Shown: one piece after another, positions 2,615-24,555 of the stretch | How the letters are laid out: each line of letters begins with the position of its first letter | How positions within the stretch are numbered: position 1 is the stretch's first letter | Assembly (NCBI RefSeq): GCF_006345805.1 | Contig: NW_021834067.1 | Location: forward strand, 1 to 26,787 | Length of the DNA stretch: 26,787 bases | Direction: 5' to 3' | Source of the DNA: Octopus sinensis | Taxonomy: Eukaryota | Notes under the pieces: model-generated | The model's database searches: none | What the model saw: only the letters and a program-made list of their open reading frames with translations | Told to the model about the DNA's origin: nothing | Program-made: the position numbers and the translations under genes

Positions 2615-3480
2615 AATATTCAGTATCGCCACTTGGAGTTTTTATTGATTTTATTTGCCAGACTTTTCCCGGCAATATTTACTTCATCCGCATTGTTGGA
2701 TACGGAATTTGTGTACTCGGGTCTTGCTGATTTTATCACGGGATATTGTGAATGCTTATTGTGCTGTATTTGATGGGAGTACAGAAAAGGCATGGTTTTT
2801 TGATGTATTGCAGGTTATGTGCTTTGTCGGAGACTTGGTTGAGGATTTGGACACGTGCGATATGACACAGGAGTTGGGGGAGAATGTATATCTGGTTTGT
2901 AATTGTAGATTACTCGTTTGTTGGACTGGGCCTGTCGTTTAGTTGACGATAGGAAGACACTTTCTATGGTGTTGTCTTTAGTTCGGAAGTGGGTTGTTCA
3001 GTCACTAGGAAAAGGGGAGACAGTTGGGGTGAGTCGATATTTGTCATGTGTCGTAGAGGAAGGCTGTTTATCGTTGGTTGGGATCATTTCCCGGAGTGGA
3101 GGATGATGGGGATGTTCTCTTTTTCGTACTCCGAATTTTGTGTCGAGAAATGTGTGATAAGTCCAGTGCGAAAGGTAATATAATTTGCATGATAATATAA
3201 TTCAGACTCTGACATGGGGAAAGTGTTGGCCCAGTCTTTTGAGGATATCCAGACTGTCGTAGGGGCCGATGTGTTTAACCGCATGTTTGCGGATGCCAGT
3301 CGAGAGATCACTTCTCGGAAATATAAGAAACGGCAAGATCAGATAATGACCAGTCTTCATAATTTGACTGTTGCTAATGAGAGAAGGTTGAAACAACGGT
3401 TGCGAAATACTACAGCAATTAAGAGAAGACGTGAAAAGTTTGGAGAAGCTATTCCCCTTGCCAAAAGACTTGATTTATAA
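2615..3480 (+). pseudogene. UTP20: 3'-terminal fragment of UTP20 (SSU processome HEAT-repeat protein), 5'-truncated, introns retained
   Basis: After splicing 23-31 nt introns it reads WNFSRQYLLHPHCWIRNL...DMTQELGENV...LLDWACRLV...RKAVYRWLGSF...LRILCREM...LAQSFEDIQTVVGADVF...RREKFGEAIPLAKRLDL*. This is collinear with the UTP20 C-terminus (HLRHPHNWVW, DQSLGEQV, RTCIFKFLGAV, PLFRELN, LSQEIIELLKKLVG). UTP20 is >2500 aa and nothing upstream continues it. Confidence 0.7.
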
Positions 3481-3654
3481 TTATCTTTTATATTTTTTTC
3501 AGAATCATGACTTTATATCTAAAGAATTTAAAGGATTGGGTAGGGAGATAATCTAGGGATCTAGTTTTCGTACCTTCTGAAAGACATTAGTTAACAAAGC
3601 ACTAGGTTTTCTAAAGATTGTTACTCTCTATCAGACGAATGGTTTAATTTTCAC

Positions 3655-3985
3655 GTTAGTTAGTTATCCCCGGTTTCGCAATCTTGTAGAAAACCACCAG
3701 CAAGTAAAAAGCGAGCGATGGAGGCCGGCCGCTCCCACAAGGAGGGGAGACGATTGAGATGGCCCAGGGGATGAGAAAAGTCATTTGGGTGCAAGCACTA
3801 ATATGGTTTGTAAGGGAGCAAGTGGTTTATATTGACGCCAGGATTGTTCTTTGATGTGAGGAGTAATTGTTAAATCTGCCTGCAATGTAATTCGTTAGTC
3901 GTGAGGTCAGTGGTTGTTGAATGTTGTGGGCAAAAGCCATGTTGCGATTTGGATAGGTTGAATGTGTGTTTAATTGAGCTAAGAA
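3655..3985 (-). mobile_element. Internally deleted I-group LINE relic (RT domain 2-3 joined to the element 3' end)
   Basis: Minus strand reads SKSQHGFCPQHSTTT...IAGRFN...QRTILASI (RT motif QHGFRP.HSTTT). It then jumps to the C-terminal SLWERPASIARFLLAGGFL and the tail ggggataactaactaac. Confidence 0.7.
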
Positions 3986-4679
3986 TGAATTTTTCAAGAA
4001 TTTTTGAAATTACCGAGAGGAGACAGATTTTTCTGAACGATTTTTGTTTAGTTTAAAGATTTGGATAATGATTGACTTTTTCTATGTCATCGGTATCATA
4101 TCAGAATTTAACGATGAGTTTATAATGTCTGATAGTGTTTTCAGCCTCCATGGGCCTAATTCTTCCGATCGTATTTACAAAGGCCATAAGCTTCCTTGGC
4201 AAGTGTGAATTTTTGGTATTTTTGACCAACTAGTAGATTTGGCAAAAGTAAATAGTAATTAAGTCTGATTGTTTTTTGTCTAAAAAGGGACTTGGAATGT
4301 GGTTAATTTGTTGTGTTCATTTGGCTAATTTTTGCGTATTGGTTAATAAGAGTGTTTGCTTGTTCGAGGAATGTCTTTGTTTGGTGTTTAGTGTTTTCCT
4401 AGTTACGGGAAAAATTTTTTTAGTATTTTCTAAAAGTTGGAGGATTTTGTACGGTGGTTGAGAGAGGAAACAAGTCGGAGTCGTAGACTGTTGTAGATTT
4501 TCTGTGACGTTTTTTAAAGTCAGAAAATCTGTTGATCATACGGATTTACAAAAGTAAAAGAGAATTTTTGAAATTCCCTCTCAGTACACGTGGTTTTTTC
4601 AACCTGAATTAATTTAGTTGTGTATCGGAGTTGTAGACTTTTGTAGGAATTTGGGTCATTTTTATTTCTTAATTGAGAA

Positions 4680-6200
4680 ACAAATTTCGGAATCAGTTTA
4701 CTTTTAACCCTGGCTCGATTTTACAGTGGTTATGTACTGGGGTCACTTATCTGATTTCTAAAGTAGATAACCCTTCCGTCCCGACAGATTATTGTCCGAT
4801 TACCTGTATGCCTAATTTGTACAAGTTGATGACTAAGGTAGTGACTACTGAAGTCAGAAATTTCATGTAGGTGAATGGAATTCTGTCCGAGAACCAGTTA
4901 GGTACTCGATGGGATTGCCAGGAAGTTAAGGAGCAGGCACTGATCAACAAATACCTTGCGGGAGCCCACGGAAACTTACTAGTATCAATGTGGGTGGATG
5001 TGAAGAAGGCATATTACTCGGTTGACCATGCCTACTTTGTTGAGTGTCTGTGAAGACTCAAGTTGCCTTCATAGTTTATCAAATTTGTTGCAACTGTGAT
5101 GCACAGGTACGTGCCATAAGCGAGATTAAGCTAGAGAGGGGCATATTACAGGGCGACAGCATGTTTTCGTGGCTGTTTGTCCTCTGCTTAGAACCGTCGA
5201 GTAAAGTCCTCACTGCCCAATTTAAACAAAAGTCAATCGAACATGACGGAATGTGTTTTAACATCAACCATATCATGTTCATAAACGGCATTAAACTGTT
5301 CGCTTGGTCTTCAGAGACCCTCCTCTCAATGGGCAAAGCCTTGGAAGGTTTTATGAAGGGCCTGTGTCTGGAGCTTGAATACAACAAGTCGGCGACTGTG
5401 TGTGGTGACCTATTCAAAGTCTTGGAGGAGCACCAAAAGTATAAGTATCTTGGCTTAGTTGAAAGTCCAGCCTCATTAATCACACTTGAAATGAGGAAGT
5501 GTGTAGTTAGGGGTATCGTAGTAGGTTTTTTTAAAAGGGGCAGCAATGTAATGCAAAACTTGCCTCAATTCACGAAATTTATTTCATGCCTTGAACGAGT
5601 ACACCACCTCATTGTCTGAAGAATACTCCGAAAGAATCCCATCGACGTGTTGGCAAGCAATAAGGAGAGATTATACTTGTCTTGCGGGCAGTTAAAACGT
5701 GGACTGAGTAACGTCGTACACTTAAGTGAATGAATTCTTACTAAGATGCACGACACCTTGTGAAGTAGGTCAAGTTTATCCCAAAGGAAGGTTGTCATCA
5801 TTGCTTTTGAAAAAACGCGTGGTACACACCTTGGGACTATAAAAAACTACGTGTCGGCTAGGTATGGTCTGAATGCTACCCAAGTTAATGTGAATGAGTT
5901 GATCAAACTTCAGAGGGAATCCCTAATTAAAAAGATCAACTTAAAAGTCTTTCACAAGATTCTCTTTACCAGCCTGGACAACCCGCACATTGACGTATCG
6001 TCGTCATCAACGTGGCTGAAATATGGGAATAACTCTCCCCGATCAGAAGGGTTGTTCTCATATTTGCTGGATAAAAACGTAATGGTCAACGGAAACAGTG
6101 CAAAGACTGTAAATGGAAAGCGATGACTGTTGACCATTTAGCAACGAAGTGCGGGAGAATTCTGTACCATGATTACAAATAATGAGGTCCCACTGCAGAC
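4680..6200 (+). mobile_element. Degenerate R4/Dong-like (REL-endonuclease class) non-LTR retrotransposon, RT to CCHC region, truncated at both ends
   Basis: Motifs TGVTYLISK..DYCPITCMPNLYKLMTK, LSENQLG, VDVKKAYYSVDH, RGILQGDSMFSWLF, NHIMFINGIKLFA (catalytic DD changed to NG), YKYLG, ERLYL, SSTWLKYGNNSPRSEG and TVDHLATKCG. Multiple stops and frameshifts. Confidence 0.9.
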
Positions 6201-7119: not shown

Positions 7120-9110
7120 ATGACTGCTTTTGAAGGTAGTCATTAGTCTGTGAAATGGCTGATAGAAATGGGTGTAATTCCGGAAATAGCCAAGTCCATC
7201 TACAAACTAGAATGGGAGTAATTATACTGCTGTATTCCTTTCTCCAAACCTTCTAGGCCTTCTGTATTCCACTCTTGCAAGTAGTTTTCGAGTCACTTTC
7301 CACTGGAGTGACTCATTCAACCACAGAAAAGTCGCGTTGTGAGTGGAATAAAGCTGATTGTGACCCCGACTTGAGTTGAGGACTATTTCTAATTCTTAGG
7401 AATGGAAGGACTCGAGTGTTGTGCAGTAGGCAATCGATGGACAGGCTGTCGTTGTTCGTTTGGGACAAATCACACTGGTGGGGCCAATAATTGTTATCGT
7501 AGTTAAGAATGATGGGCTATGTCGAATTGGTTGGTCGACCAGACAAGCTGCACTGTGCATTGGACTTGATAGATTTAGTTTTGGATATGGTAGCACTGCC
7601 AAAAAGTCTACGAACCGACAATTTATGACATATGGAGAGGAATATGGTATCCACGATGTCGTCGGGTCTTTCATTGACCGAGATTTGGGTGTTATTCGAT
7701 TCACCAAAAACGGTTTTAGTGTTTACCTGCTCATAATTAGGCCGGGACCTCGGTTTGGCTTTTGAAATTCCAAAAAATTTAAAATTTGAAACATTTTATC
7801 CTGCCAGTGCTTTAAAAGTTGAATCGATTTATTAAATTAAAGTGTTGTCGCGTTAGTACTAATTTTGGACCATTTTCATCGGTATGTATTTCTGGTCACT
7901 CCAATAGAATTACCCTTCTCAGTTGGAACAGATGGTCGCACAGTCCCCTTCTCATACAGCCTCGAGGAGTCCCAGATCTCCTTTAGCCTTCATTATTGAG
8001 GTCTGTGTTTTATCACTATTTGTAGCCTTCACGAGAGTTAGTCCTTCAGGTAGGTTAGTACGATTAATCAGGTCAGACTTTTGCCCAATTGAATGACTTG
8101 GACATATTTGCCAAACATTCAGTTGTGTTGTTGGCTTATTCCTGCAGTTGTTTGTCGCTGACTGGAGGGGGGAGTGTCGAAGAACAGATGAATGAGTGTA
8201 GAGTGGGACAAGTATATATAATTATTGAGATTAGAATCACATTGTTGTTGCCACGGTGGGTAAATTGAAGGAATTTTTGGATTCGGACACTCTCAATACG
8301 CTGGGATGCAAATTCCTGATTCTAGACGAAGCCGACACATTGATCAACAGTTCAGACAGAGTGTGCTTGTATTACCAAAACATTTTATTACCAACAAACA
8401 CAACTCGTCGTCAAAATATAATTTGTTCGGCCACACTGCACAATCCATCAATTCGTCGATTTGCTAATCAAAGACTGCCGTTTGCCACCTTCATCGACCT
8501 CAAGAGAGAGGACAGTGTTCCCGAGACGGTTCATCAGATTGTAATCCGCGTTGTGCTCATTGCGGGTTTGTTTTGTGGACGCGGATGAGGACCGAGATTA
8601 CATGACATTTGCGAATCCAATCGCGACTGATAGAGTACACAAAATGACCCGACACGAGATATTTCCTGTATTTTTATGGCAGTATTCAGACGAGAGATCT
8701 CGAGGGGTCAAGTTACTGATGGGGATATACGTAGTGAGGACGATTGAGAGACTTGGGATAGATCGGGCGATTATATTCCGCAGGACTAAGCTTGATTGGG
8801 ACAATCTGCATGCTTATTTTGTTGGGATATATAATTGTATTTTAATTGGTGTATTTCAGCTGGGAGTCCTTTTGCCAGCAAGTTTAAATCACTGCCCTTC
8901 CATTCTGGGGAAAGTAGAAGGAATGAAAATTTGAGTGAGTTTCAGGTTTTTGTGTTTTAGTTAGTTTAGAAAGGAGGTGTTAACTTTCTCATTTCGACGG
9001 ATGTGGCTTGTCGTGGACAGTTGAACAGTTGCCTTTTGGTGTTATTTAATTTATAAATATTTAGTTATAAACATGACTCTCCCGGACGATCCTGCGAACT
9101 ACCTTCATCC
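7120..9110 (+). pseudogene. DDX1: DDX1 (DEAD-box helicase with SPRY insertion) pseudogene; Walker A exons missing, 3'-truncated in motif VI
   Basis: Starts MTAFEEMGVIPEIAKSIYKLEW. SPRY: DGLCRIGWST...FSFGYGSTAKKSTNRQF. Then IIEPSREL, FLILDEAD, ICSATLH, IDLKREDSVPETVH, AIIFRRTK, FLISTDVACRG and VINMTLPDDPANYLH, with many 21-30 nt introns. Lacks PTDIQ...AETGSGKT, has frameshifts near 8970-9020, and stops before HRIGRVGR. Confidence 0.92.
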
Positions 9111-9320
9111 GGAGGAAGCACAAGACTGACATGTGTTTCTTTAGTCTCATAGCAAAATTTTCTAAACAGACGATCATACTTGCTGTTTGCTTTAGTTTTG
9201 TTGATGGTTTTAATAACTATATTTAACTTTTCATGTAGAATTGGTGAAAGAGCTTTTGAAACCAAATGGTGTTTATATAGAACCAGTGGCTGAAGACTAT
9301 GGATGTTGGAATTCAAACGT
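9111..9320 (-). mobile_element. hAT transposase fragment (Buster/ZBED5/SCAND3-like)
   Basis: NIHSLQPLVLYKHHLVSKALSPILHEKLNIVIKTINKTKANSKYDRLFRKFCYETKETHVSLVL matches the Buster CxxH..LA.K.LSP.LHE.LN.VIK.VN.IKA.....RLF...C......LLLHTEVRW segment. Confidence 0.75.
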
Positions 9321-9370
9321 CGTGGGTTCGAATCCGATAGAACCAAGTTTTCAGCCGGGGTCAAATCTTG
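9318..9370 (+). repeat. tRNA-derived SINE-head relic (Pol III B box)
   Basis: gtgggttcgaatcc (T-loop/B box) followed by non-tRNA sequence; no complete cloverleaf. Confidence 0.4.
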
Positions 9371-9974
9371 TCAACGTTCCCCACCCGTGAGGCGACGAGT
9401 CCATCTGGCACGACACAGATGTCGAAAGGGGTACCTCCTACCTCCCCTGATCACATTACCGATGAAGAATCTCCATTATGCAAGAAACCCGTCCGGATTC
9501 AAATGAAGTGCGGTGAGCTACGGTAGGAGGCTGACAAATGGGAACTGGACATACCAGAAATTCCCCATTTCTCTTTGGAGACGGATGGCTGTAATGAAGA
9601 TTTGGAGGCTAATGTTGATCGGCACAAGCAATCCCTTCGTTCCTTGCTCCTTCATTTGATTAATTAGTTGTGACTGTTTGTGCTGGGCTTGCCATGTTGT
9701 GCAAGCTTGGGGGTTATAAATAAATTTATGTAGAACGCATTATATATGAATCATATTAGGACAAATTTTTTTCAAATATGCTGCAAATCATTCATACTTC
9801 TCAAATTGATGAGTTAGCTAACCGACGAAAGTCTTAATTCTTGTGTAAAATTAAAAATGACTAATTGTCAGTGAGATACAGGGACAATTATTTTATACTT
9901 TCTATTTTTAAATTTTCTTTCATTTTTTCTTTACAAAATATTTTTTATATGGCGGCTCTTTAATTATGGAACAA

Positions 9975-10255
9975 ACTGGTAGACGACTCTCCTCCTCTGG
10001 TGGACGACTCGGAGTCTTCGCTGGACCGAGAAACGAGAACATCTCTGGCACAACTTCGTTCCGGACATTCCCTCCTAATTGATGAATCTGGCTATTGGTC
10101 TCCTCCTCCGGACCATCTATGCCTATTGCTTCGAGAAGCTTCCTCCGGACCGGGGCCTCCGGCGTGCATTATGGACTTATGGAAGCGCCCAGCACTCGCT
10201 AGTGAGCGCCTGAGGACAGCCGGCCTCCTACAAGCTAGAGAGGTCGGGGTAACTA
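9975..10255 (+). mobile_element. 3' end of an I-group LINE
   Basis: SLDRETRTSLAQLRSGH...DLWKRPALASERLRTAGLL followed by ggggtaac; the LAQLRSGH and DLW..P motifs are typical of I-group ORF2 C-termini. Confidence 0.7.
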
Positions 10256-10499
10256 ATTATGCTTAATTGCTGTTTAAGTAAAAAAAAGTGGCTTTTTGCC
10301 ACAAAAAGGGTGCCGACTCCTGACCATGTCTATAAAAAATTCCTTCAAATCTATTTTTTGGTTAAAAAATTGTGGCACTCCGGATAGTTCCTCGATTTTA
10401 ATTGTCAGCATTTTTCAGGATTTTTAATTGAATTTCAGCATTTTTTGGTCATTTTGTATGCACAGTAACACAGTAGTTAGATGTCGGGTTAGAGTGACT

Positions 10500-10798
10500 T
10501 TTGTTACAGGTTCGAGTTTGGCTGCTGTCAATCTGAGGGAAGGTGGAACGATGCTCCTCATTAAACCACTATGCACATAAAATGGACATCTCGATCTTCC
10601 CCTTTTGTCCCATTTGCTGTGTTGACGAACATAAAACTGCCAATCTATTCCGCTGTCCCGGTCTTCTTTCACTCCGCAAAAAATTTGTCATTCACTCCCT
10701 GGAGGTCCTATAGGAGCTACCTGGGAGGGCGCTCTTGTTTCTGCAAGCTGCTGGTCTCATAATCTAATGTGAGATCGAGGTTACGCAACAACAACAAC
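10500..10798 (+). mobile_element. 3' end of a second I-group LINE with CCHC knuckle and (CAA)n tail
   Basis: RCSSLNHYAHKMDISIFPFCPICCVDEHKTANLFRCP...VL*ELPGRALLFLQAAGLI*, then (CAA)4C at 10786-10798. Confidence 0.75.
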
Positions 10799-11342
10799 GA
10801 TGCTTTGAAAAGGATTTGACAAATGAAGTTGTCATCAGTGGTCCTCCGCGGTGGAACCAGATTGTCTGTGAAGGACCCACACGCAAGAAAAATGAAAAAA
10901 ATAATGAAGAACGTTAGCCTCTACCTACGATTAATTAACATTAACTGTTCTTCACTTAAAAATAAAGTTTATGTCTTGCCTATGCGGGGTCATAAAGTAC
11001 TATAGCTTTCTGGAAAAGGCTATTATTAGTAACACAGTTGTGTGTGGTCTGCTTCGAAAGCAGCCGGTGCTTCGAAAGTCCGACCTTATTATATCCTCTC
11101 AGGAGGGGAAAGATCCATTCTCAAGAAGTAGTCCTTATCGAGCATTCCTCATAGTGGTCCCCAATTATTCAGATTTATATTTAGCGTATAGTTTCATGCT
11201 TTGATCACCTTTAAAGACTAAGTAAGCCGGGCAGACAATGGAATAATACCTAGTTTTTTAAGAAAAAATTAAATGCTAGCTAGGCTAGGTGGCTAAAAGA
11301 CTATTCAATAGCCTATGGATCAGTTCAGCTACGCCGCAATAT

Positions 11343-11400
11343 GTATTCCCGGAGCACGAAGACAGAGATTCGATGATAGATCCAATATAAAATAATATTG
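11343..11400 (-). mobile_element. CRE-clade LINE 3' coding relic (inverted copy)
   Basis: Minus strand YWIYHRISVFVLR; recognisable DNA similarity to 11654-11695 in the opposite orientation. Confidence 0.45.
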
Positions 11401-11529
11401 GATTCATTTCTTCCTTCAGTCATTGCGTCGCATTTATCTTGGACAATTTCACGTTTCCATGCCCATATCTTCACTCTTGATTCATCAACTGCAGGGGGCT
11501 AAGGGAAGTTTGTGTCCAATCGACCGTAT

Positions 11530-11625
11530 ACAGGAAGCTCTATCTGCAAGATTCAACTGTTCTCAGTCTCAAGTTTCACGGATTTTTAAGAATAGGCAAG
11601 AAATTATGAAACTAATTTTGAAAAT
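11530..11625 (+). mobile_element. pogo/Tigger N-terminal HTH relic
   Basis: QEALSARFNCSQSQVSRIFKNRQEI resembles the CENP-B/psq helix-turn-helix of Tigger transposases. Confidence 0.55.
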
Positions 11626-11720
11626 AAGTGAAACCGACCGGAGGGAGACGAGCTGGCTCTTCCAGCGAATCTCGGTCGCGGTGCTCCGCGGGAACTGCCA
11701 CTCGATACGCAGCGCGGGGT
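11626..11720 (+). mobile_element. CRE-clade LINE C-terminal (REL) relic
   Basis: ETDRRETSWLFQRISVAVLRGNCHSI matches the CRE-clade terminal motif D.RE..WL.QR.S.AVQRGNA.SI. Confidence 0.6.
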
Positions 11721-12309
11721 CTTTGAGCTGACCACCAGGCTCTTCATAAACTCGTGTTAACTTTTTCATATTTTGTTTAAGAATCTAAAAAAAAGTGAAG
11801 CCTCTTTAAAGAAAATTAAAAACAAGAGGTTGAAAAAGAGTTCTGGAATTCGTACACACCGTCAATTAATTTGATACTTTTGTCAATTCATAATTGAAAA
11901 TAATAATTTTTTCTAAAAATGCTTTCTTGATATTGTTCGTCACTCAACAGAGTAACCTTTCCAGGAGGATTGCAATCACGTCAATCATCAAAACAACAAA
12001 TCTCGCTGAAATTTCCATATTTCCTTAGGAAGATCTCCGATGGACGTAACTCAACCTGCCGTATTTGATGACAGTTGGAGCCAAAGGGGCGTTTGCCTTT
12101 ATATTAATAGGCCTTTTAAATCGGTATATTAATTATCGATTTTTTTAACGGCTCGTATTCAACCGTATCTCATTGTGAACCGGTCACAATTAATGTTTTC
12201 GTGATCATCATTTGAATTTTTGATGAGAAATGTAAGTTTTAATGATCTCTAGTGGTCTAAAAGCTTCCGATAGCTCAACTTTTTTTTCAACATCACTTGT
12301 TTCCTAATT

Positions 12310-13794
12310 TTAGTCATTAAATAAAATCAAGTACTGGTTGAGATTTTTTATCTTCTCGAGATTGCCCTTCCAAAAATTTAATTAGTTCTTCTTTTTCAAT
12401 ATAGACATATTCAAGAAATCTATCATAAAAAATTGCATCATTGATTTCACATTTTTTAATTAATTCTTCATAATTATTCTCATAATCTTTGTTAATGTTA
12501 TTTATTTCTTCATCAATTGTGCATGCCGAAAGCAATTTCAAATAGTTGTGGGAGTTAAGTTATTTCAAGCAAAGAAAGTAAATTGCGCAGCAGATTTAAG
12601 GGTGATTGTATTAATTGCATTCTGATGTTTTTCTCCTGCCTCAATCTTTTCTATTATTTTGTTTATTTTCAATTCTGTTAACTCAGCTTTAAAACATTTT
12701 ATTATTCCCTGATCCATTGGTTGCAACAATGAGGATGTTCTTGGAGACAAAAAAGAATTTCTATAAACTTCAAAGTGACTATGATTTGATGAGAAAAACA
12801 TTGGTTAATCACAAGTAAAATTTTTCTTTTTCCCTTGCCAGCTCAAATTCAAAATCAGTCAGTCATTTATTAAAAATTTCAGTGTTCATCTATGCTTTGT
12901 TCGAATATGTGTAGGTAACATAATTTCCAAAGTTAAAATTTTTGAAGCATCTAGGATTTTTAAATCTTCCTATCATCAATGGCATTCTTTTATCTTCTCC
13001 GGAACATTTTGCACATATTAATAATGAAAATCGATCCTTCGACAACTTTATTCCAGGTCTTCATTTTGTACATACACTTTTCGAAAGAATTGCCTTGTAA
13101 AAAACACCGGTTTCATCAGCATTATAAACGTTATCCAATCAATATTGTTGAATTTTTAAACTGGTTATGTCGTTGAAATCAGTAATGGATTTTTCATTAT
13201 GATTAATTGATCCCATATCGCCGTGATGTTTTCTTAGCTTAAGACCATTTCGGGTCTTGAACTTTTCTTTCCACCCACGGCTTGCTTTAAATGCTCCATT
13301 ATTTTCTCCAAATTTGAGAGACTTTGAAATGATTATTGAATCGGATAAAATTGCTCCCTTTGACTCCTTTAGGCTAATCCACGCTACCAGTTTCTCATCA
13401 ATTTCTTTAAATTTGAGTTTAGAAATTATTGTAGCGTTGAATGTTTTTATATCAGTCCTGTTTAATCGGTCGGATTTTGACTTAAGATCGTTTATTGCTC
13501 TCGAAGAAATCGTCTTTTACAGTCTGACAGAAAAAATTATAGAAAATTGTAAAGCAGACATTGACGGGTTGTCAGAAATATAACGAAAAATAAAAAAATT
13601 TTCGTTGATAGAAAGTCTACAGTACTACGACTTATCTCAAAAAAACAGCGTGGCGTGTAATTTAAATAATTAATTTGATTAACAATTAAGTATAAAAAAT
13701 TTTTCAAATTAATGACAAACGGATTCGAGAAACAGGCGGATTCGAGAATCTTCCATAGGAAATTCAACAAGCAGATTCGAGAGGTTTTACTGTA
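12310..13794 (-). mobile_element. Degenerate pogo/Tigger DNA transposon with one surviving TIR
   Basis: CENP-B HTH (EIDEKLVAWI...FKASRGWKEKFKTRNGL), VYNADETG, and FLSPRTSSLLQPMDQGIIKCFK, with stops and frameshifts. TA-CAGTAAAACCTCTCGAATC TIR at 13774-13794 with subterminal GATTCGAGA repeats near 13722 and 13739. The opposite TIR was not found. Confidence 0.85.
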
Positions 13795-13849
13795 CTTTTT
13801 TTAGAATTTTTCATCCACGTGAATCTAATTCTTTTTACTATAATATATG

Positions 13850-14030
13850 TTCGCTTTTATAACAGGAGACATTAATGATCTCGGTTTTCGTTTAATTGAC
13901 CGAAAGGCTGAGCTCAGCCAGAGCTGGGACGATATGTTCGACATCCGAATTACGTGTCCAGCACACCCTCCTAATGTGGCATCATCCAGATACCACAGAT
14001 TGAAGGAAGAGACAGCAAATCGAGAAGTTC
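13850..14030 (-). mobile_element. CRE-clade LINE RT fragment
   Basis: FNLWYLDDATLGG followed, after a frameshift, by LSLSVN*TKTEII (GL.LN..K.E motif). Confidence 0.65.
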
Positions 14031-14354
14031 TGACCGTTTTAAAATGCGGCGAGACGAGTTGAAACAGATAGTCGCGAGGAAATCGTTTTTTTGGTGCATG
14101 TGGGGTGGTAGAGTTCACCAACGTTGACCGTTCCAGTACAGTTTACAAGGGTAGACCTGTGATCAGATCACTGTATCGGAAGGATAAAGTTTGGGTTATT
14201 TGTATTTTCGATAGCTACCGAGTGTGCGGGCTCCTAGTCTAACTGAAACGTCATCATTTACAAAAAGTTACATATGATATATATACGAGTAAGTTGCTTA
14301 ATAAAGTAATAATATAAATGACTAAAATTTTGCAGCTCACTTGTTTTTGTTGTT

Positions 14355-15690
14355 ATGTCTAATTCCCCATTATTAGTTTATATAAGAATAAGATTATATT
14401 ATACGATATAACTAAACCCAATAGACCACAAAATTCAGAAGAAACACAAAATTCAGAAAACATAATTAAAACGACCTCAGAAAATGCAATATCCATTACC
14501 GATAAGAATGGAAATGAAACTAAGAATTTCAAATTTTGCAAAATTTTCGATTAAAACTCATCTCAGGAAGAGATTTACAGCACAATTGTGACACCAGCTA
14601 TCTCCAAAGTTATCAACGGCTACAATTTTACTGTCTTTGCATACGGACAAACAGGTGCTGGGAAAACATACACAATGGAGGACGATTATAATGATCAAAC
14701 TTACAATGAGTGGCCAGTACTTTCACGTGCAGGCATCATTCCTCGTGCCGTTGGCGATATTTATCGAAAATTGAAAAAATGGTATTCAATCTGTCTATAT
14801 GTGCCATAGGACTGCTATACATCAATGAAACTGTCATTTCTTGAACTCTTTAACGAAGAATTGTATGATCTGCTTGCTAAAGAGGAGGAGAGTGACATTA
14901 AGCTTTCTGTATTTGAGGATTCGATGAAAAAAGTTATTTTTATTTATATTTTCGAAAGGGAGCTGTCATCATTAAGGGCTTAGTGAAGTCGTTGTGAAGA
15001 ATCAGAAGGAACTTTACCAAAAAATCAATCTTGCTTGACTCCGAAGAATAACTGCCGCTACTCTCAGCAATGATAAATCTAGGTTTGGTTATATTTTTAA
15101 TTTCAAGCCGATCACACACAATTTTTACTATAACTGTCCACATTCGACAGAATTTTGGAAATGGAGATGACTCAATTCAGCATTTATTTATTAATTGACT
15201 GTCATCAGGTGGATTTGCCAGAATCTGAAGAAAGTAGCCGAACAGGGAGTAGCAAGCAGAGAATTCGGGAGGCGGGTAATGCGGTGGTTTTAACTCTCAG
15301 CTTCCATAAATCAAAGTTTATTGACCTTGGGACGAGTTATTTATGCTTTGACTATCAAATCTCCCCATATTTCTTACCGAGAGAGCAAACTGACAAGAAT
15401 CCTCAAAGATTCATTTGGAGGGACCACTAAAACAGCAATGACAGTCAACATTTCCCCAGCTGGAAGTTGCCTAGAAGAGACAATCAACTCACTCGATTCT
15501 GCCAAAAGAGCACAAAATATTAAAAATACGCCTGAAAAGAACCCCAAAATAGAAAAAAGCCAGCTTACTCAGGTTTGTGATGGTGGATTGTGATTTTTAG
15601 TTGTACGAATTAGAGATTGCTTCTCTTAAGGCTGAAATGATGGACATTACTAACAAAAATTCACTTTATATAACTGACGAGCGATATCGG
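14355..15690 (+). pseudogene. KIF11: Kinesin-5 (Eg5/KIF11/BimC) pseudogene: motor domain plus neck, 3'-truncated
   Basis: [121 protein letters not shown]. Disablements: first intron donor GT>AT, in-frame TAA and TGA, a frameshift near 14980, DLAGSE changed to DLPESE, and loss of the KLNL segment together with its donor site. Confidence 0.92.
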
Positions 15691-15705
15691 TGGATTATTT
15701 GATTT

Positions 15706-16303
15706 ATTCTATAAATCAGTCCGGGAAACAACTCGGATTCATAACTGCAAATAAGTGAGAGAAATGCCTGCACAAATGTTTGTGTGCATAGTAAAGTCCT
15801 TCCAACTGGAGTGCGAACTGCACATCCGACGACCCGACCATATTCTGAATTTTGAACTCAGAAAACACCGCCTACAGCAATGGCTCGACTAAACCACCGG
15901 AAATCCCAACTTCTGGACAATACGAGCGTACTTCCTGGCTGCCCACTTGGCCTTTTCTTCACTCTTAGCCCCTGTGCACACCATTTTGCCAGAACTGAAG
16001 ATCAGGGCAGTGGTCCTCGGGTCCCTAATCCTCATAATCACTGCCGCAAATCGCTTTTGGTTGTATTCTGCATTGTAGAGCGATGTGTTTCAAGTCAAGT
16101 TTGACCCAAGGTTGAGAGTACAGACGATATTCCTGCAGGTGTTAGACAGTTCTGTACTGAAGTTGGGGTCTCATAGCAAAATTGACCTCGGAAGTGGGAT
16201 TGAATGGTGTTTGGGGGACTTCCAGGTCATTTGGCAGCATGCTTGGGATTTGAGGCTGTGTGGAGGGTGCTGGGGTGGCTGCGGTGTCAATTGAGTTAGT
16301 CAT
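15706..16303 (-). pseudogene. TBP: TATA-binding protein pseudogene, 3'-truncated (not called by the ORF track)
   Basis: MTNS...PQTP...RPQLQ|[18 protein letters not shown]...[34 protein letters not shown]...[14 protein letters not shown]|...FKIQNMVGSSDV...LEGL...|YESELFPGLIYR, with three 23-26 nt introns. A 1-nt deletion and an inferred 8-nt deletion create a premature TGA; the sequence ends at GLIYR. Confidence 0.95.
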
Positions 16304-16409: not shown

Positions 16410-17270
16410 CTATGACTTTTGAAGAATCATGAGACAATTCCATCTCAAGTAAGTACAACAGGGATTATCTTCACTTTAGCCAGATGAATCGCCCCTAATT
16501 CATTTGCCAAAAGGTCATATTTGTGGAACTTTTCCACTTCAACTTGCTTTAGGCAATTTTGTGAGGTAATCCCAACTTCAATGAGTGTAATTGTATTCCT
16601 CACCTTGTCATGGACAAAAATATCTGGTTTACCGTTTGAAACAGCCGTATCCGTAATAGTTGTGTCCACTCGAATTTCCACAACTTCATTGGCGACAACA
16701 GATTGAACTGAGTGAGTTTTTAATTTCTTCGTTTTTCTTATTCCGTATTGGCGGCATAAATGCAAATGTAGACATTTGACAATTTCATTATGCCGTCTTA
16801 GATAAGAGCTGTTCAGCATTCGTCCACATCTGGTAGCAAGGTGATCAACGATCTTCTTTGCTGAATTGCATTTATTTTCTCCGTTATCAAAAAACAAATT
16901 TTGATCCTGTAGTAGACAACACATTCCTTCAGTTCTTGCAGAGTTGTTTCCATGAACTAGCCACCCTGCAGATTCATTAACATTAACTTCAGTGTCCTTC
17001 AAACACTGGAAAAGAAAAGAATGCAATGGCTTAGTTTCAATCTGCCTAATTAGATATTCATGTTGAATTTCCACCAATTTCGTTATTGTCAGTTCATTTA
17101 TATTTTCGATATTGTACTTTCGGGATATGAATTCTACGATAGTGGCCATATGACTCAACTCATATGATATGAGTTTTCTTTGAATTAACGACCCGTAGAA
17201 TTCCCTTTCTTAGGCAGTAATCGGCTTTATGCTTCAAGTCATGATAAAATTGGAATAGCATTCGTTCAGA
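16375..17270 (-). mobile_element. R4/Dong-like non-LTR retrotransposon 3' part (CCHC plus REL endonuclease), degenerate
   Basis: ORF 16445-17158: SAGWLVHGNNSARTEG, VDHLATRC, RRHNEIVKC, KPDIFVHDK, LIEVG, EKFHKYDLLANEL, IIPVVLT*DGIVS*. Confidence 0.9.
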
Positions 17271-17863
17271 TTTGGGTAAGCCATTTTTAAAAGATAATTC
17301 AAATGCAATTTTTAATTAGAATAATTGATTAATCTACACTCTCCCATATATAAATTGCTATATTCAATACCTTTTATGTGGTTGTCATAAAAACACGTAA
17401 AAGGACAGGGTGCCCAAATCTGAATCTTGCAACTCAACGACCTCCGTAACCCACCGTCTGTGGTACACAGTATGAACCTTGTCAATCAGGCATTGGAGAG
17501 TCAGAAGATGTTCTTTAAGATTTGTGTTAACCATTTCTTGAGTCTTGGACAAGTCACCAACCACATTGTCTACGTTCCTTTTGTTTTTTCTTTTAGTAAC
17601 TTATGTAGATAAGTCGGATGATACAGAATTTCATTTCTTAGCAGAAACCAACATGGCCACAACAACAAGAAAATTAATAATTACTTTCTTAAATACTATA
17701 TAATCATATATCCTGCATTGGTCGATTCGCTGATCTAGATTATGAGAGCTAAAGGAGTGCTAATATAATTTCTTTATTTTAAGAGTGGCTTTAAGCAATA
17801 TTTTAATCAGGAAAGTTAGTGATAGAGAAAATAAAGTCCATGATTAGTTGATAGAGAAAATGA

Positions 17864-20147
17864 TTAGTTGAAACCGTAGTATTCAACGTCGTCAAAGTCC
17901 GCCACCTCGAATCCCGACAGTCCAAAGCCGGTGAATATTCCATTGGTCACGTTAGTTGTATTCGCATAGATCAAATTCCCTTGAATCCTGGCAGTAATGT
18001 TATTATTCTGGAACTCATATAATAATCAAACGTGTGCACTGAACCTCATCGTTATCCATTCGGGTACGGGCAGTGTGGTGGCGTTAGGAATCCGTGCAAT
18101 CAAGGACTGGCGTGCTAAGGGCGAGTCACAATTTGTGTGTACCCAAATCGTTGTAGATATATGCTTCGTTTAACTGAGTGTCGTAAAAAAAGAAAAGTCC
18201 TTCGGCATTGTAGATATTGATTTCTCGTTGAATCATTCGCAGCATTACGAACGGCATCACATTCAATTTGGGCAATATTTTCACTCTAACGGAAATCACC
18301 GAACTAAGTAGAAAAAGCATGCCAACTTGAGGGCGGACGGGGGGAGCATAACGAATGGTGTGTAGCAAGTAGCGGGTGTCCACAATGTGGGCGGCGCAGG
18401 CGCCATTTGACGGTAAAAACGATTCCCACTTTCCTCCATCACTTCGAACGACCCGCATTGTTGGGAAAGGTAGGGAGCCTCAGAGTTAACTTCAAGATGT
18501 TCAAAATTCTCAATGAAAATGTCGGGGAAGCTGGCGGAGGGCGGAATGCTGGGCAGAGTGATGTCGTTGGTGTCCCTCGTACTAAACGAATACACACAGT
18601 CCGGCTCGAATGTAAAACTGAATTCTCCGTCCACGATCTGGCTTATACACACAAATCAACCTCCACGTCCGCCATTTTGGCAAATTTGTCGCCATCGTTG
18701 GTCAACTTGGTCCTCCGAACGTGTAACACAGTATTATTCTTCGAGACTATGAACTTGTTGTTTATTACGGACTCGACTTCCTGAACAAGTAAACCAGCCA
18801 TGCAACCGTCGTCTCCACCAGAATTAAAAAGTCCTCTCGACTCGGACTGGCCAGAGTAACGTAGGACCCAAAGTCGGCAAACCCAGCAGATCTTTCCAAA
18901 AACACCCAATCCATATCCACGTGGTGTGTCACATGAGCTGGGCGGTTAGGTTCGCCAAGTCACCAATTTCGAAGAATGGGATCGTGACGGAGAAGTAGTT
19001 GCTCCAGGGCTCCAAAGCGCGGATGATTCCCGTTTCGTAGTTGGGGAAGCCCGGGTTGTAGGACGAGGTGAGGGACCACGCGAGGAATCCCGTTAGAGAG
19101 TGGTTGATGTAGTTCCTGTTGAATCTCTTAGAATATGCATAAAAATAAAACACAGCCACGAATCCGCCGTCGAACTTGTCTTCGGAGGCGATCTGGGGTT
19201 TTCCTTGAGAGTTGTAGTTGTAGTAGTTATTAGGGTAATGGAATCTGATTGGTAGACAAAAATCAACCCGACGATATCCACCAAATCGGCAAGTGTGGGA
19301 TCATTCTCCATATCCCGGTTGATGATGGGGACTCCGTCTACGATTATTTTAGTGTCCTGGCAGCATTGGCTAAGATTATCCCGCAGAATCTACTCGGCTC
19401 ATCCCACAGTCCAACCTGCATGCAGCTCTTGTTGTACAGTCTTTGATTCCAAATCTGTGAGTTAGTCCAGGAATAACCCCGATGGAGTCAATCGTCAAGT
19501 TGTGGTGTTTCTTCGCCCCAGTAATCCATTTGGTGGTGTAGTTCGCCAGTTTATGTTGATGCAAGTACATACCCTCCAGCCAGGAGGGGAAGCACCAGGA
19601 GAGTCCGCTCAGATGGAGTTTGTTATTTAACTATAAATTAAGGATAAAGACGACATCTTTGGCTTTAGTCATGATTTTCCACTCGTATCCTCGAAAGTAG
19701 TTTTCGTCGTGTTCGGTGTGCATGTGAGAGGCCTCACTGCCGCCTGGAGATGTGGCATTACTGGCTCACTTGAGGATTCACAGTCGCCCCCAATTTCGAC
19801 TTTGAGGATTTGCAGAGATGCTCCGTATTTGGGCTGAACTGATTTAATTAATGAATTACCCGGAAAAGTAATTCCATAATTTGGTGGAAATTGGAATAAT
19901 TGGTCAAATATTTGGATGTCGCCTAAGAATAAGTTGAGGAGAAACTACCTTGCCGCTGATTGCCCCGATCCCCATGTATTTCGAGGTGTTTTGGTCATCT
20001 AGGTCGATAACAGTGCTTGATTCCGAGATGCTGTTGTTACCCGAGTTGATCCCACTGAGGGATTGCCAGGTCTGACTGAGGGTTATTTGAGTTGATCACA
20101 AACGTGCATGCCAAAACTGTAAGGACAAGCAATTGGGTCGCTGCCAT
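17864..20147 (-). CDS. GALC: Galactocerebrosidase-like glycoside hydrolase family 59 protein, about 634 aa, 15 inferred introns of 23-28 nt, signal peptide; acid/base Glu replaced by Gln
   Basis: Manual splicing gives an unbroken frame from ATG 20147 to TAA 17866-17864: GIGAISG|ATS..LTNY, LF.PKYGASLQILKVEIGGD, GSEASHMH...DENYFRGYEW, GLSWCFPSWL, IG|IWNQR, HYP, ASED, AWSL..SY, EPWS, SEAP...Q.GSFE, FEVADFDD. All are collinear with animal GALC through to its C-terminus. One 27-nt intron is in-frame and stop-free, so it could be retained (+9 aa). Confidence 0.92.
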
Positions 20148-20520: not shown

Positions 20521-20898
20521 ATGCATTGGCCACTTTGCTCACTTAACGAGGCTTTTGTGGAGGGGACTGATCCTCGAACTGTAAATGAAATATGTTCCTC
20601 CGTGTTGCTCAGACAGGACTTTATCACCACTGAGGAAGTAGAGCTACTGACCAAAGAGGTCCACTATCATCTAAAAAGAGCCAAATATCAAAACAACCAT
20701 TTGGATGATGTAAGATACACCACATGTAGGCCATTGTGGACTTCAGAAAACTGGAGAGACGGGACTGGTCTCCCCCATTTCCCCTATTACTCGTGCGAGG
20801 GAGACTGTCTTCAAGGAGACGGCGAAATAATGCCCTCCTTCCACGTGCTGGATTTGAGCGAGGATGGGTACATTAAGCCGCATGTGGACAGTCCGAGG
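20521..20898 (+). pseudogene. ALKBH7: ALKBH7 pseudogene fragment, 3'-truncated
   Basis: DFITTEEVELLTKEV...KRAKYQNNHLDD|AIVDFR...W...HVLDLSEDGYIKPHVDS matches ALKBH7 (YEYDHWDAAIHGFRE; HVLDLEARGYIKPHVDS). After a 20-nt intron at least two frameshifts are needed. Nothing follows the next donor site. Confidence 0.88.
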
Positions 20899-20905
20899 GT
20901 TAGAG

Positions 20906-20972
20906 AATAGTTGAGCATTTTAATCACAGAATTATTTTTAGAAAATAGTTGAGCGTTTTAATCACTGAATTA
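20906..20972. repeat. 29-nt near-tandem duplication at the ALKBH7 truncation point
   Basis: aatagttgagc(a/g)ttttaatcac(a/t)gaatta at 20906-20934 and 20944-20972. Confidence 0.85.
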
Positions 20973-21270: not shown

Positions 21271-21319
21271 TGAGATGTCCATGATGGCGTCACTCTTCAA
21301 ACCAGAACGGAGCTTCCAG

Positions 21320-21395
21320 CACAGGCAGCCGCTGGGATTCGAACCCTTGACAGATGGAATCGATCGATTCCAATCCATGCATTGCGATGCATTTT
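21320..21395 (-). repeat. tRNA-derived (tRNA-Leu-like 3' half) SINE-head relic
   Basis: Minus strand GGGTTCGAATCCCAGCGGCTGCC resembles the T arm and acceptor strand of eukaryotic tRNA-Leu (GGGTTCGAATCCCACCGCTGCC); the 5' half is not tRNA-like. Confidence 0.4.
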
Positions 21396-21639
21396 TCAAC
21401 ACTGAATCAAGTTGCTACTGATTCCTACTTGACTTTTGAGAAAAGAGCTAACATATATACTTTCCCTTTTTTGTCTTTTCTTTTGATTCAAAAAATTCAT
21501 TTTTATTGTTATCTTTATTTGTTCGTTTGCTTTTTTGGGAGCCAAAGTTAGTCAATTTTTTCAGATTTTAACAGTACACATATTGAACTTCATTTACACA
21601 AAAAAGGCAATCTGATGAAAGAAGGCAATTTATCAATTA

Positions 21640-21810
21640 TATCAACTCTGTTCCGTCGATATAGACATAGCTTTCGACTTAGTTTTGAGGAAGATTCTAT
21701 TAAGCAAAATAATTTAAAACAAGTTTCTAGGGAAGCTCAAACTATGGATCACCAACTTTCTAAGTAGACGAAGGAGTAGGGTGTGCCTCACAGGACTGAA
21801 ATCTATGTTA
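21640..21810 (+). mobile_element. LINE RT fragment (AP-endonuclease class, I/CR1-like)
   Basis: VDI..AFDLV...LLSKI...GKLKLWITNFLSRRRSRVCLTGLKS (RT domain 3 to 4 linker). Confidence 0.65.
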
Positions 21811-21964
21811 CGTCTTCTGCCTAGTAAGACACTGGTATTGACCAAAAATGTGGATCCAAAACAATAGTAAGACATCATCCTGGCATCAATAAACATCAGT
21901 TGCGATTTAAAATTATAATTAAAGATGTCTCATTTTTAGTTAATTAACCAAGAATCGGTGAAAG

Positions 21965-22640
21965 CGAATTTTACGTGACAACTGGCTAATTTTTTTCCTT
22001 ACGATTCTAAGGTAACCATCTTCCCCCAAGGACGACACCAACTATTTTTAATTTCAATGCCTGTTTTTTATGAGCCAGTATTCTTTTCTATTATCTACCC
22101 CATATTCAACGAGACACGTTCTATGTACGCGGTCACATCCAGGATTATCAAAAATTCCTTTAATTCAACACAATTATACCTCCTGAATACAAATAATTTG
22201 ATATACAAATTGTAATCCAAATAGGACCAATTTCCAGTAAAGTTCTTAATGCCAAGGAATGGTAAGTATAGACATAATTTGTGAATACTACTGGATTGTT
22301 TTTATATCTGCATTCTTATTTCTATTATAAAGTGTTTCATAAACAATTCCTAGATAAGGGTACTGTTCAGTTGTGCTGATTCCCCAATTTTAAATGATAT
22401 ATTCATAAGCGTAATACGGGTATCCGCTTTTACATCGACAATACTTACAGCAATCAAGCACGTTTTGTTCACTAAAACTAACCAACTTGCCATGCTTAAG
22501 CGCGTATATACTTTCTATACTGGAAATCTGGAGAGTATTTATTTACAAACTAAGCTAAATATATAACATGATCCACAATCAAGCTGATTTTTAACATTTG
22601 TGACTACATTTTTATCACATCTTAATATCCAATTAACAGA
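21965..22640 (-). pseudogene. Papain-family (cathepsin L-like) cysteine protease pseudogene, mature domain only (not called by the ORF track)
   Basis: SVNW..VTNVKNQLDCGSCYIFS|..SIES..ALKHGKLVSFSEQNVLDC...C.SGYP..AYEYI...GI.T...YPY...GPI...|GIFD..C...H..CLVEYG.....YWLIKN|SW...G.DGYLRI, with four 19-23 nt introns, two in-frame TAA and a frameshift. No propeptide upstream. Confidence 0.88.
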
Positions 22641-23237
22641 TTATACTAAACCCCTGATTCTTTAGTTAATTACTACTAGGGCAATAGGCAGTGGTTGTTT
22701 GAAAATACAAAGTGTATGGAAATGCAGAGATATGTGTTTAAAGATCAAATGGAGACTCGGAGTGGCTGTCTTAGCACTCCTCTTGTATTCCTAGACGCCG
22801 ATCATCAACGACAGTTCAAGTCATTACTATCCCTACTGCTCTGCCCTCCAGGGTGTCGTGGCAGAAAGTGGTGAACAAGAGTTGTAGTTTGTGCCGGGAG
22901 GGAGAGGGGTGTACGTGAGTTTAGACAGAAGGGAATTTTGAGTATGGAGAGGCAGTCGACGGAGGGGGGATTGGTTGGAAATAAGAGCAGTGATTTGGCA
23001 GGTCAACTCGTTGCAGCTGCGTGCCATGTTATCGAATGAATGGCAGGTAGTGAGTATTCAGAGAATAATTGGAAGTGATGGGCAATGTGTTGGCGGGGGA
23101 GGACAGTCCTTAACACGCCCCTCCTACATCTGCACACTCCTCAGTGAGTTAGACCAGCCATTCCTCACAGAACATCCTCCTCAACACTACGCCACCCACC
23201 CAGTACTTGCTCACCAAAGTACTCGCTTTCCTCAGGA

Positions 23238-23295
23238 CAATCGCTTTCAATACATATCAGCTCATATGAGGTCAATAACACGTGGAATTTGGTGA
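23238..23295 (-). pseudogene. Micro-fragment (about 60 nt) of a Mi-2/CHD3-4-5 chromatin remodeller ATPase domain
   Basis: [15 protein letters not shown](E/D) matches [14 protein letters not shown] of animal CHD3/4/5; the match is very short. Confidence 0.6.
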
Positions 23296-23299
23296 CACG

Positions 23300-23590
23300 T
23301 CTTTGCCTCTGTCGGTGGTGGGGCTTCTGAGGCCGATTGAGGAGTCCCCCCCGAAGTACGTCACATAAAAATTGTCCCTCAACAACCCCAACTCGTCTAC
23401 CAGGAATTGGATTGCCCACGCAGCCATTTCGGCCTTGAAGTAGTCCCCGAATGACCAGTTTCCCAGCATTTCGAACAATGTGTGGTGGTACGAGTCCTTC
23501 CCCACGTCGTCCAGGTCGTTGTGCTTCCCGCCCGCCCGAATGCATTTCTGGGAATTGACTGCTCGCTTGAGTTTCACAATTTTTGAAAAA
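23300..23590 (-). pseudogene. AARS1: Internal fragment of eukaryote-type alanyl-tRNA synthetase, truncated at both ends
   Basis: [47 protein letters not shown]...YVTYFGGD; neither the N-terminal DPTLLF.NAGM segment nor the downstream domains are present. Confidence 0.9.
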
Positions 23591-23699
23591 TTTGTTTTAG
23601 ATGAAGTTTTAACGCTCAAAATCGATGATTATCCAAAATAAATGTACATTCATGAGGTCACAAATTTAAAAATAAGATTTACAAATATTTTCCTGAAAA

Positions 23700-23990
23700 T
23701 AACCACTCCGACTGCAAGAAAGATATCGATCAACGGACTTTGATATACGGCCTCGAATAATAGTTAATAGTTTTCTTTCGAGTGGTGACCAGTATTATCG
23801 GTCTTAAGTTTCCAGACGGTCCTCTTCGTATTTCTGGTTTCTGAATAGGTTTTAATATTTCTGTCGCGATTGGCTAAGCTATTGGGGTCATATTTGAGTA
23901 ATTACCACGGAACTCCGTCACATACTGAAGCTCTGTTGTTGTTCATACAGAGAAATGCTTTTGACCTCAGAATGTGTTATTTCGTTTGAC
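23700..23990 (-). mobile_element. RTE-like LINE RT fragment (domains 0-2)
   Basis: ITHSEVK...NNNRAS.CDGVP..LLKY..., LKPIQKPEIRRGPSGNLRPIILVTT.KKT, ..LQS, with frameshifts. Confidence 0.7.
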
Positions 23991-23994
23991 AGGC

Positions 23995-24555
23995 TCTGTG
24001 GGTGTCCAATATAGTTTGTTTCTGGAAGTGGTCAGCAATTCTCGAACTTTTTCTCCATCATCCAGTATTCCGAGGAGTGACTGTACAAAGGGCAACCTGT
24101 AGTGTACAATGAGAATATATATGATGATATAGAAAAGTATATTGGAGTAAGAAGTGTGAATTCATTGACTAGTTCGTGAAGTACACAACTCGTCTTACTT
24201 CTGAACAGCCCTAATGCGCTTGCAGGCAATCTAGACTGGGGGAGTCACACCAAAATGGATAGACTCACTGTACTCTTTTAAACAAGTGTCAAACTGGTCA
24301 ATTTGTGGTATACACGAATGTATTCTAACAGGTTGTATTGTATCATATGAGTTGTGTATTTTCCACGAATTGGTCTGTGCTCAATACATTATCGGACATG
24401 TCCTTTATCAGCCTACTTAGAAAGGTGTCTGCATTTACTATGTTTTGGTCAATGTTATTGAATAGGCCTAACATGTTCTTGTTCTGTTGGGAGGTAAATT
24501 CCAGGGAGGAATCTCGTCTGTCCTCTAAGTTGACGAAGACTGCTTTCTGACTCAA
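23995..24555 (-). pseudogene. EXOC1: Exocyst Sec3/EXOC1 internal fragment with short introns and stops
   Basis: LEFTSQQNKNMLGLFNNIDQNIVNADTFLSRLIKDM...IPQIDQFDTCLKEY aligns with EXOC1 [36 protein letters not shown]...EVDQIELKLSSY. It has GTGAG/GTAAG-type introns of about 30-33 nt and in-frame TAG/TGA. The left boundary is uncertain. Confidence 0.55.

Follow-up and report, generated by a model that had tools for sequence, protein, structure and literature searches.

Decayed, intron-bearing copies of essential genes lie beside an intact galactocerebrosidase gene in dicyemid DNA deposited as Octopus sinensis

We analyzed one contig of the Octopus sinensis genome assembly (the entire VCDQ01012182.1 of GCA_006345805.1, 26,787 nt; here called the window), on which pieces of several essential genes lie close together. 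The window is genomic DNA of a dicyemid mesozoan, for example, Dicyema japonicum, a resident of the O. sinensis kidney, and was deposited as octopus. It holds one intact gene, encoding galactocerebrosidase (GALC), together with truncated copies of housekeeping genes, and the larger of these fragments are real non-processed pseudogenes. We consider it fairly probable that the window is a repeat-rich stretch in which the decaying partial copies derive from one or more duplicated gene-dense blocks and have been eroded by deletions and transposon insertions.

Dicyemid DNA in the octopus assembly

Genes in the window were reconstructed with a purpose-written protein-to-genome aligner, which permits GT-AG introns, frameshifts, and stops, and by open reading frame (ORF) building across mini-introns. 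Together, the two approaches gave 37 inferred introns of 18 to 39 nt with a median of 26 nt, all of them GT-AG, as the aligner imposes this boundary. Introns fell within the same size range in every gene or piece whose length allowed a judgment (Table 1). The median intron length of dicyemids is 27 bp (PMC6543705), and in a survey of 51 genomes, the only animals with introns shorter than 30 bp were myxobolid myxozoans and Dicyema japonicum (PMC13644364). The source host of D. japonicum was O. sinensis, and its genome has a GC content of 36.7% and a repeat content of 49% (PMC6736024); the GC content of the window is approximately 38%. The transposon family of the window also adjoins mini-intron genes on other contigs of the same assembly. 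Since no animals other than dicyemids and myxobolids are known to have such mini-introns, the window is dicyemid DNA. A first-pass annotation, made from the sequence alone, had raised a dicyemid as a possible source, and this is borne out by the short introns and by the removal of 14 of them from GALC, which leaves a single ORF of 644 codons. No near-identical proteins for window genes were found in protein searches, which were not exhaustive.

The window is one of three contigs marked by mini-intron genes, the others being VCDQ01008671.1 (77 kb) and VCDQ01000770.1 (246 kb); the window itself counts as 27 kb. Two more contigs, one of 379 kb and one of 285 kb (VCDQ01011117.1), share the transposon family only. 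Assembly GCA_006345805.1 contains dicyemid contigs, and no description of such contigs was found in the literature searched. Their products bear O. sinensis names, including "GPI ethanolamine phosphate transferase 3-like," "chitinase-3-like protein 1," and many of the form "uncharacterized protein LOC...". On VCDQ01008671.1, we found two complete genes without defects. One encodes pyruvate kinase (527 aligned codons; six introns of 23 to 27 nt; L005:4693-6417), and the other encodes a mitochondrial-type malate dehydrogenase (MDH2-like; 308 codons; four introns; L005:675-1706); introns of the two genes together span 23 to 30 nt. The annotation of both is fragmentary, with MDH2 given as 144 amino acids and pyruvate kinase given as 268 plus 103 amino acids. 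These partial and split models probably arose because the gene caller was unable to handle mini-introns. The same contig carries a 12.3-kb segment twice, with 99.66% identity between the copies (L005:7303-19629 and L006:1-12317), one of which reaches the contig end; either the parasite has recently undergone a segmental duplication here, or the assembly contains an overlap or a haplotype that was not collapsed.

Only two genes are annotated on the window contig, a transposon ORF and a 251-residue kinesin model over positions 9419 to 15593 of the plus strand. The kinesin model joins a piece of a dispersed repeat, at approximately 9419, to exons of a dead kinesin-5 copy, and a pseudogene is thereby annotated as protein coding in the octopus record. 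A widely used octopus reference thus holds sizeable parasite contigs, with genes and pseudogenes that appear in the annotation as proteins of the octopus. Parasite genes under octopus names may mislead comparative studies and studies of horizontal transfer. The same contigs constitute unrecognized long-read data for an animal group that is hard to assemble.

Gene fragments and their disabling mutations

The first-pass annotation had named ten gene fragments. Profile or sequence searches confirmed seven of them (UTP20, DDX1, kinesin-5, TBP, ALKBH7, cathepsin, and alanyl-tRNA synthetase [AlaRS]), and the proteasome-beta and CHD/Mi-2 pieces were recognized at the level of motifs. The tenth, EXOC1 at positions 24346 to 24555 of the minus strand, was unsupported: there was no Pfam or PDB match, and neither tblastn nor spliced alignment with an EXOC1 sequence was significant.

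Each supported fragment is cut within its gene, and the missing portions were not found elsewhere in the window. The kinesin-5 piece comprises residues 22 to 397 of approximately 1,050, in spliced alignment, and the stalk and tail are absent throughout the window. The DDX1 piece runs from the native ATG to approximately codon 620 of 740 and ends just before motif VI; its 5' start reads MTAFE, a 30-nt intron, and EMGVIPEIA. For TBP, the N-terminal region and core residues 5 to 137 of 181 are present. The ALKBH7 piece covers residues 2 to 111 of the 200-residue PDB construct, roughly the first 60%, and extends as far as HVDS in the HxD motif, with no C-terminal remnant in the window. The cathepsin piece consists of the mature domain only, without the propeptide, and corresponds to residues 100 to 301 of 316 of human cathepsin L. 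After excision of its introns, the UTP20 piece covers positions 214 to 307 of the 308 in the UTP20_C profile. Its frame is open and the native stop is retained, while the 5' part is missing; human UTP20 residues 2668 to 2763 match this piece weakly (E = 0.68). In five pieces, the 5' end is native or nearly so and the 3' end is lacking.

The remaining pieces are short. The AlaRS piece is a single open exon corresponding to human residues 60 to 145 (63 to 148 of 968 on the full-length sequence), and a relaxed alignment for the AlaRS N terminus was unconvincing. In a PDB search with the CHD snippet, CHD4 was the sole remodeller, at an E value of 1.3, and was absent at E ≤ 1. A tblastn search within the window with a CHD4 sequence gave an E value of 2e-5, and no convincing CHD homology was found in the window beyond the core motif of the snippet. 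The proteasome-beta piece had no PDB match at E ≤ 1; it aligned over 21 residues, with 11 identities, to the mature N terminus of human beta5 and over 30 residues to beta1.

Larger fragments carry disabling mutations. Kinesin-5 is interrupted by in-frame stops at 14552, 15036, and 15196 and by three frameshifts, and its switch II motif has changed from DLAGSE to DLPESE. In DDX1, a 78-nt internal deletion takes out the Q-motif and P-loop (GSGKTG to GSNYTA), position 7377 holds an in-frame stop, and the frame shifts several times. The TBP frame shifts twice and has lost 3 residues (9 nt), and the cathepsin piece contains three frameshifts together with two stops. The larger fragments resemble one another in defect density, which is roughly 1.5 to 2.5 per 100 codons. 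For the UTP20, ALKBH7, and AlaRS pieces, truncation is the only certain defect.

Three intact genes served as controls with the same aligner: GALC (644 codons), pyruvate kinase (527), and MDH2 (308). As references for the spliced alignment of GALC, we used weak matches (at most 43 bits) from a representative-library search with a GALC exon. The GALC product has a signal peptide, a GH59 domain (Pfam, 9e-75; profile positions 1 to 293 of 294), and a C-terminal lectin domain (4.7e-13). No defects were found in the 1,479 control codons, whereas approximately 21 were found in approximately 1,300 fragment codons (probability under equal rates, approximately 1e-7). The frameshift sites are not in long homopolymer runs. 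Because the intact controls carry no defects, those in the fragments are not sequencing noise, which is in line with an earlier argument made from the unbroken GALC frame. Rescue of the frames by stop codon reassignment or RNA editing was rejected, since the pieces have also shifted frame and lost motifs and since three other genes are read in the ordinary way. These findings show that the larger fragments are real non-processed pseudogenes. Retained introns also confirm the first-pass view that the copies were made at the DNA level and are not retrocopies. That annotation had further stated that all but the two shortest pieces keep their introns; the mini-introns were confirmed, and the AlaRS piece proved to be intronless as well.

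Origin of the mosaic

Two junctions between fragments are abrupt. The kinesin-5 and TBP pieces meet tail to tail in opposite orientations, at most 17 nt apart, and the AlaRS and CHD pieces follow each other on the same strand, at most 27 nt apart; for these, the earlier description of fragments that often abut directly is accurate. The ATGs of DDX1 (7120) and of the proteasome-like piece (7002) lie head to head across a 117-nt spacer, and those of GALC (20147) and ALKBH7 (20521) lie head to head across a 375-nt spacer. The TBP piece apparently keeps its N-terminal region and approximately 110 nt upstream, as far as a young transposon insertion. Since proteasome-DDX1 and GALC-ALKBH7 are native-looking pairs, the first-pass count of about ten unrelated pieces has to be lowered, and the number of independent joins is nearer to five to nine. 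An exact-sequence look-up of ORFs from the window, two of them crossing the AlaRS-CHD junction, returned nothing from 15 billion proteins.

In the explanation that we favor, one or a few gene-dense blocks would have been duplicated at the DNA level. The putative blocks are proteasome with DDX1 (divergent); kinesin-5 and TBP (convergent) with GALC and ALKBH7 (divergent); cathepsin; and CHD with AlaRS. Redundant block copies would then have been reduced to islands of coding sequence through successive deletions and insertions of transposons, in a genome already noted for extreme intron shrinkage. Beyond GALC, the stretch would have no function. The 78-nt deletion in DDX1 and the 9-nt deletion in TBP indicate that deletional erosion is ongoing. 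Because TBP, AlaRS, kinesin-5, and DDX1 are indispensable and the pieces are DNA-level copies, functional copies of the fragmented essential genes presumably lie elsewhere in the genome.

The first-pass annotation had instead described a sink for templated capture, in which pieces of unlinked genes were copied in singly, by template switching of the polymerase theta or microhomology-mediated break-induced replication (MMBIR) type, by a transposon that captures host DNA, or by reintegration of circles. This is consistent with the abrupt joins of unrelated coding pieces, AlaRS with CHD and kinesin-5 with TBP, with piece sizes of approximately 60 nt to 2.2 kb on both strands, and with the 38-nt unit duplicated in tandem where ALKBH7 breaks off. 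Dicyemids have also been reported to form extrachromosomal circles, but the circles are reported as mostly noncoding, with a median of approximately 700 bp (PMC6543705, citing Noto et al. 2003). Several features argue against capture and for duplicated blocks. Native starts, the native UTP20 stop, and head-to-head spacers are preserved, one of the spacers with the intact and presumably functional GALC gene, and the similar decay of the larger pieces suits one event better than many. No terminal inverted repeats surround the pieces: inverted repeats of at least 30 nt were absent from the window at a seed of 12, and a seed of 10 gave only weak pairs, many of them AT rich, with 71 to 85% complementarity. 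No Helitron-type domain or other capture-type protein was among the Pfam matches from the plus strand and chosen minus-strand ORFs, where the minus strand was not scanned systematically and Helitron termini were not searched for. The plus-strand scan used two X-joined pseudoproteins and had reduced sensitivity (DEAD and UTP20_C were missed). The capture mechanism is therefore somewhat disfavored, and we regard it as unlikely.

Other observations weigh against the duplicated blocks. No functional parent or second copy of DDX1 or kinesin-5 was found among 5.8 billion proteins, in a search that likewise failed to return the kinesin model of the window itself. The AlaRS (258 nt) and CHD (approximately 57 nt) pieces are small, come from within their genes, and are directly joined, and the kinesin-5-TBP join is clean within 17 nt. 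Duplicated blocks need several separate large deletions for such joins, whereas capture or template switching gives them directly. Adjacency of the supposed neighbor genes at another locus is, moreover, an assumption of the block explanation.

The joins might also have been made in assembling long reads of a low-coverage contaminant and exist in no genome. The window is indeed a short contig (26.8 kb) of contaminant origin in an assembly of long reads, and VCDQ01008671.1 ends in the near-identical copy of an internal segment described above. Misjoined working genes, however, would have clean exons, and the pieces instead show stops, frameshifts, and missing motifs, while the GALC gene of the same contig is free of defects over 644 codons. 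Native-looking intergenic spacers are present as well. Read chimeras join long segments, and since snippets of 57 and 258 nt are joined here, such an artifact is very improbable. Still less credible, and likewise very improbable, is a somatic product, in which DNA was reordered during dicyemid development by chromatin elimination and selective amplification, so that the window would not reflect germline order. Somatic rearrangement and elimination are reported for dicyemids (PMC6543705), and somatic cells would make up most of the sample. Evolutionary time is nevertheless needed for stops, frameshifts, and changes in catalytic motifs to accumulate, which means that the fragments are inherited, and we found no marks of programmed breakpoints and no repeated junction motif. 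An idea that goes further is that dicyemid genomes actively build gene-fragment mosaics, with pieces of essential genes excised or copied through circles or developmental rearrangement and reinserted at repeat-rich loci, and that this contig would be the footprint of such activity. We consider this improbable.

The nearest known kind of sequence is the non-processed pseudogene; for the locus as a whole, it is a mosaic of partial gene duplicates that bear introns. Primate pericentromeric duplicons contain partial genes with their exon-intron structure in segmentally duplicated, repeat-rich DNA. Like these mosaics, the window has DNA-level partial copies of unlinked genes with introns kept, stops and frameshifts, and a repeat-rich setting; unlike them, its scale is 10 to 100 times smaller, with pieces of 0.06 to 2.3 kb and 25-nt introns. 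A mosaic of intron-bearing fragments from several genes on both strands also resembles Pack-MULE, Pack-TYPE, and Helitron capture, but in the window, no terminal inverted repeats, transposase, or Rep/helicase frame the fragments. Templated insertions by polymerase theta, MMBIR, or fork stalling and template switching (FoSTeS) share the direct joining of short snippets from distant loci, as at the AlaRS-CHD junction. Such insertions at break repair are typically tens to hundreds of bases long, whereas some blocks in the window measure 2 to 3 kb, taking in complete intergenic spacers and an intact gene. Processed pseudogenes are likewise truncated dead copies of housekeeping genes amid long interspersed nuclear element (LINE) debris. 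In the window, however, introns are retained in all pieces long enough to have one, and truncation is mostly 3' and not 5'; no poly-A tails were noticed. Dicyemid extrachromosomal circles occur in the same animal group and could move pieces of DNA, but nothing in the window points to these mostly noncoding circles, which are not known to be linked to gene-fragment mosaics (Noto et al. 2003, via PMC6543705).

No description of gene-fragment mosaics in dicyemids was found in the literature searched. That partial copies of essential genes still bear introns implies an earlier duplication at the DNA level and later erosion by deletion, and the window shows gene death in a genome famous for reduction. 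Its abrupt junctions provide concrete test cases for any role of dicyemid DNA rearrangement or circular DNA.

Other open frames, transposon debris, and repeats

Table 1. Features of the 26,787-nt window, with numbers of inferred introns
Feature	Positions	Strand	Introns	Evidence or description
UTP20, C-terminal end, ~250 of ~2,785 codons	2649-3480	+	3 (23-31 nt)	Pfam UTP20_C, E = 1.5e-6, 28.1 bits (cutoff, 27)
Reverse transcriptase fragment	3873-4052	-		Pfam RVT_1, E = 3.5e-4
Degenerate non-long-terminal-repeat (non-LTR)-type retroelement	4673-6123	+		Pfam RVT_1, 8e-13; tblastx to copies on VCDQ01000770.1, VCDQ01008671.1, and the 379-kb contig
Proteasome-beta-like N terminus, ~25 codons	6928-7002	-		Motif level; MTNY then TTPIAIKYAGSGIVAADIRET, from own ATG
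DDX1 pseudogene	7120-9108	+	at least 12	PDB DDX1, E = 1.7e-23; Pfam SPRY and DEAD; spliced alignment
Dispersed repeat with GGTTCGAATCC box at head (tRNA-like B box)	9280-9750	.		tblastx, 86-94% amino acid identity to copy on VCDQ01011117.1
Harbinger/PIF-type transposase helix-turn-helix (HTH) fragment	11396-11728	+		Pfam HTH_Tnp_4, E = 2.9e-5
pogo/Tigger-type DNA transposon remnant	12320-13516	-		Pfam DDE_1, 6.6e-6; HTH_Tnp_Tc5, 5.9e-11
Kinesin-5 (KIF11) pseudogene, motor domain and neck	14423-15690	+	5 (25-28 nt)	Pfam Kinesin, 2.8e-54; top database matches all KIF11
TBP pseudogene	15705-16303	-	3 (25-29 nt)	Pfam TBP; PDB TBP, 4.8e-39; spliced alignment
Young copy of dispersed retroelement ORF family	16412-17274	-		91% identical to copy on VCDQ01000770.1
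GALC, intact	17864-20147	-	14 (GT-AG, 23-28 nt)	644 codons, signal peptide
ALKBH7, 5' part	20521-20892	+	at least 1	PDB ALKBH7, 1.4e-8; spliced alignment
38-nt tandem duplication, 1.9 copies	20900-20972	.		Tandem Repeats Finder; exactly at ALKBH7 break
Papain-family cathepsin pseudogene	21991-22640	-	2	Pfam Peptidase_C1, 2.4e-9; spliced alignment
CHD/Mi-2 snippet, ~57 nt	~23240-23296	-		Motif level only
AlaRS internal piece, 258 nt	23323-23580	-	0	Pfam tRNA-synt_2c, 1.1e-37; PDB, 1e-33
Two more fragments of retroelement ORF family	25244-26385	-		tblastx for 25247-25475; 25975-26385 by eye

The ORF builder was run with introns of 22 to 31 nt, as a looser range of 18 to 45 nt led to spurious splicing. 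Under these conditions, an open path of 430 codons was found at positions 55 to 1496 of the plus strand, crossing six GT-AG introns of 23 to 28 nt. It scored 1112, compared with 611 to 707 in shuffles of the whole window, so that only scores above approximately 750 are meaningful. Pfam gave nothing for this path, which probably represents a dicyemid gene missing from the annotation. Positions 22800 to 23170, lying between the cathepsin and CHD pieces, are richer in GC (approximately 45%) and have long open frames on both strands, with no detectable homology.

The transposon scraps reported in the first-pass annotation were recovered as RVT_1 in two stretches, DDE_1, HTH_Tnp_Tc5, HTH_Tnp_4, and a dispersed retroelement ORF family. 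Three further candidates were noticed by eye only, and Pfam found nothing in them: a hAT-like stretch (9110 to 9370, minus strand), a LINE 3' end (9964 to 10710, plus strand), and a reverse transcriptase motif (13828 to 14142, minus strand). The repeat at 9280 to 9750 is possibly a tRNA-derived short interspersed nuclear element (SINE); it had no tRNA match in ARAGORN and no Rfam match.

Four fragments of the dispersed retroelement ORF family lie in the window. The element at 4673 to 6123 has a reverse transcriptase domain and a C-terminal domain (5733 to 6123) of the same family as the young copy at 16412 to 17274, which sits between the 5' flank of TBP and the 3' end of GALC. The protein encoded at 16448 to 17152 (minus strand) is recorded on VCDQ01012182.1 alone; its relatives, of which one lies on a contig of the same assembly, are 82 to 91% identical to it and are named "uncharacterized protein LOC... 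[Octopus sinensis]." More distant relatives of the family, with 45 to 60% identity, occur in microsporidia (Hamiltosporidium, Vairimorpha, and Pancytospora) and in many metagenomes. This parasite-only host range is odd and might reflect horizontal spread.

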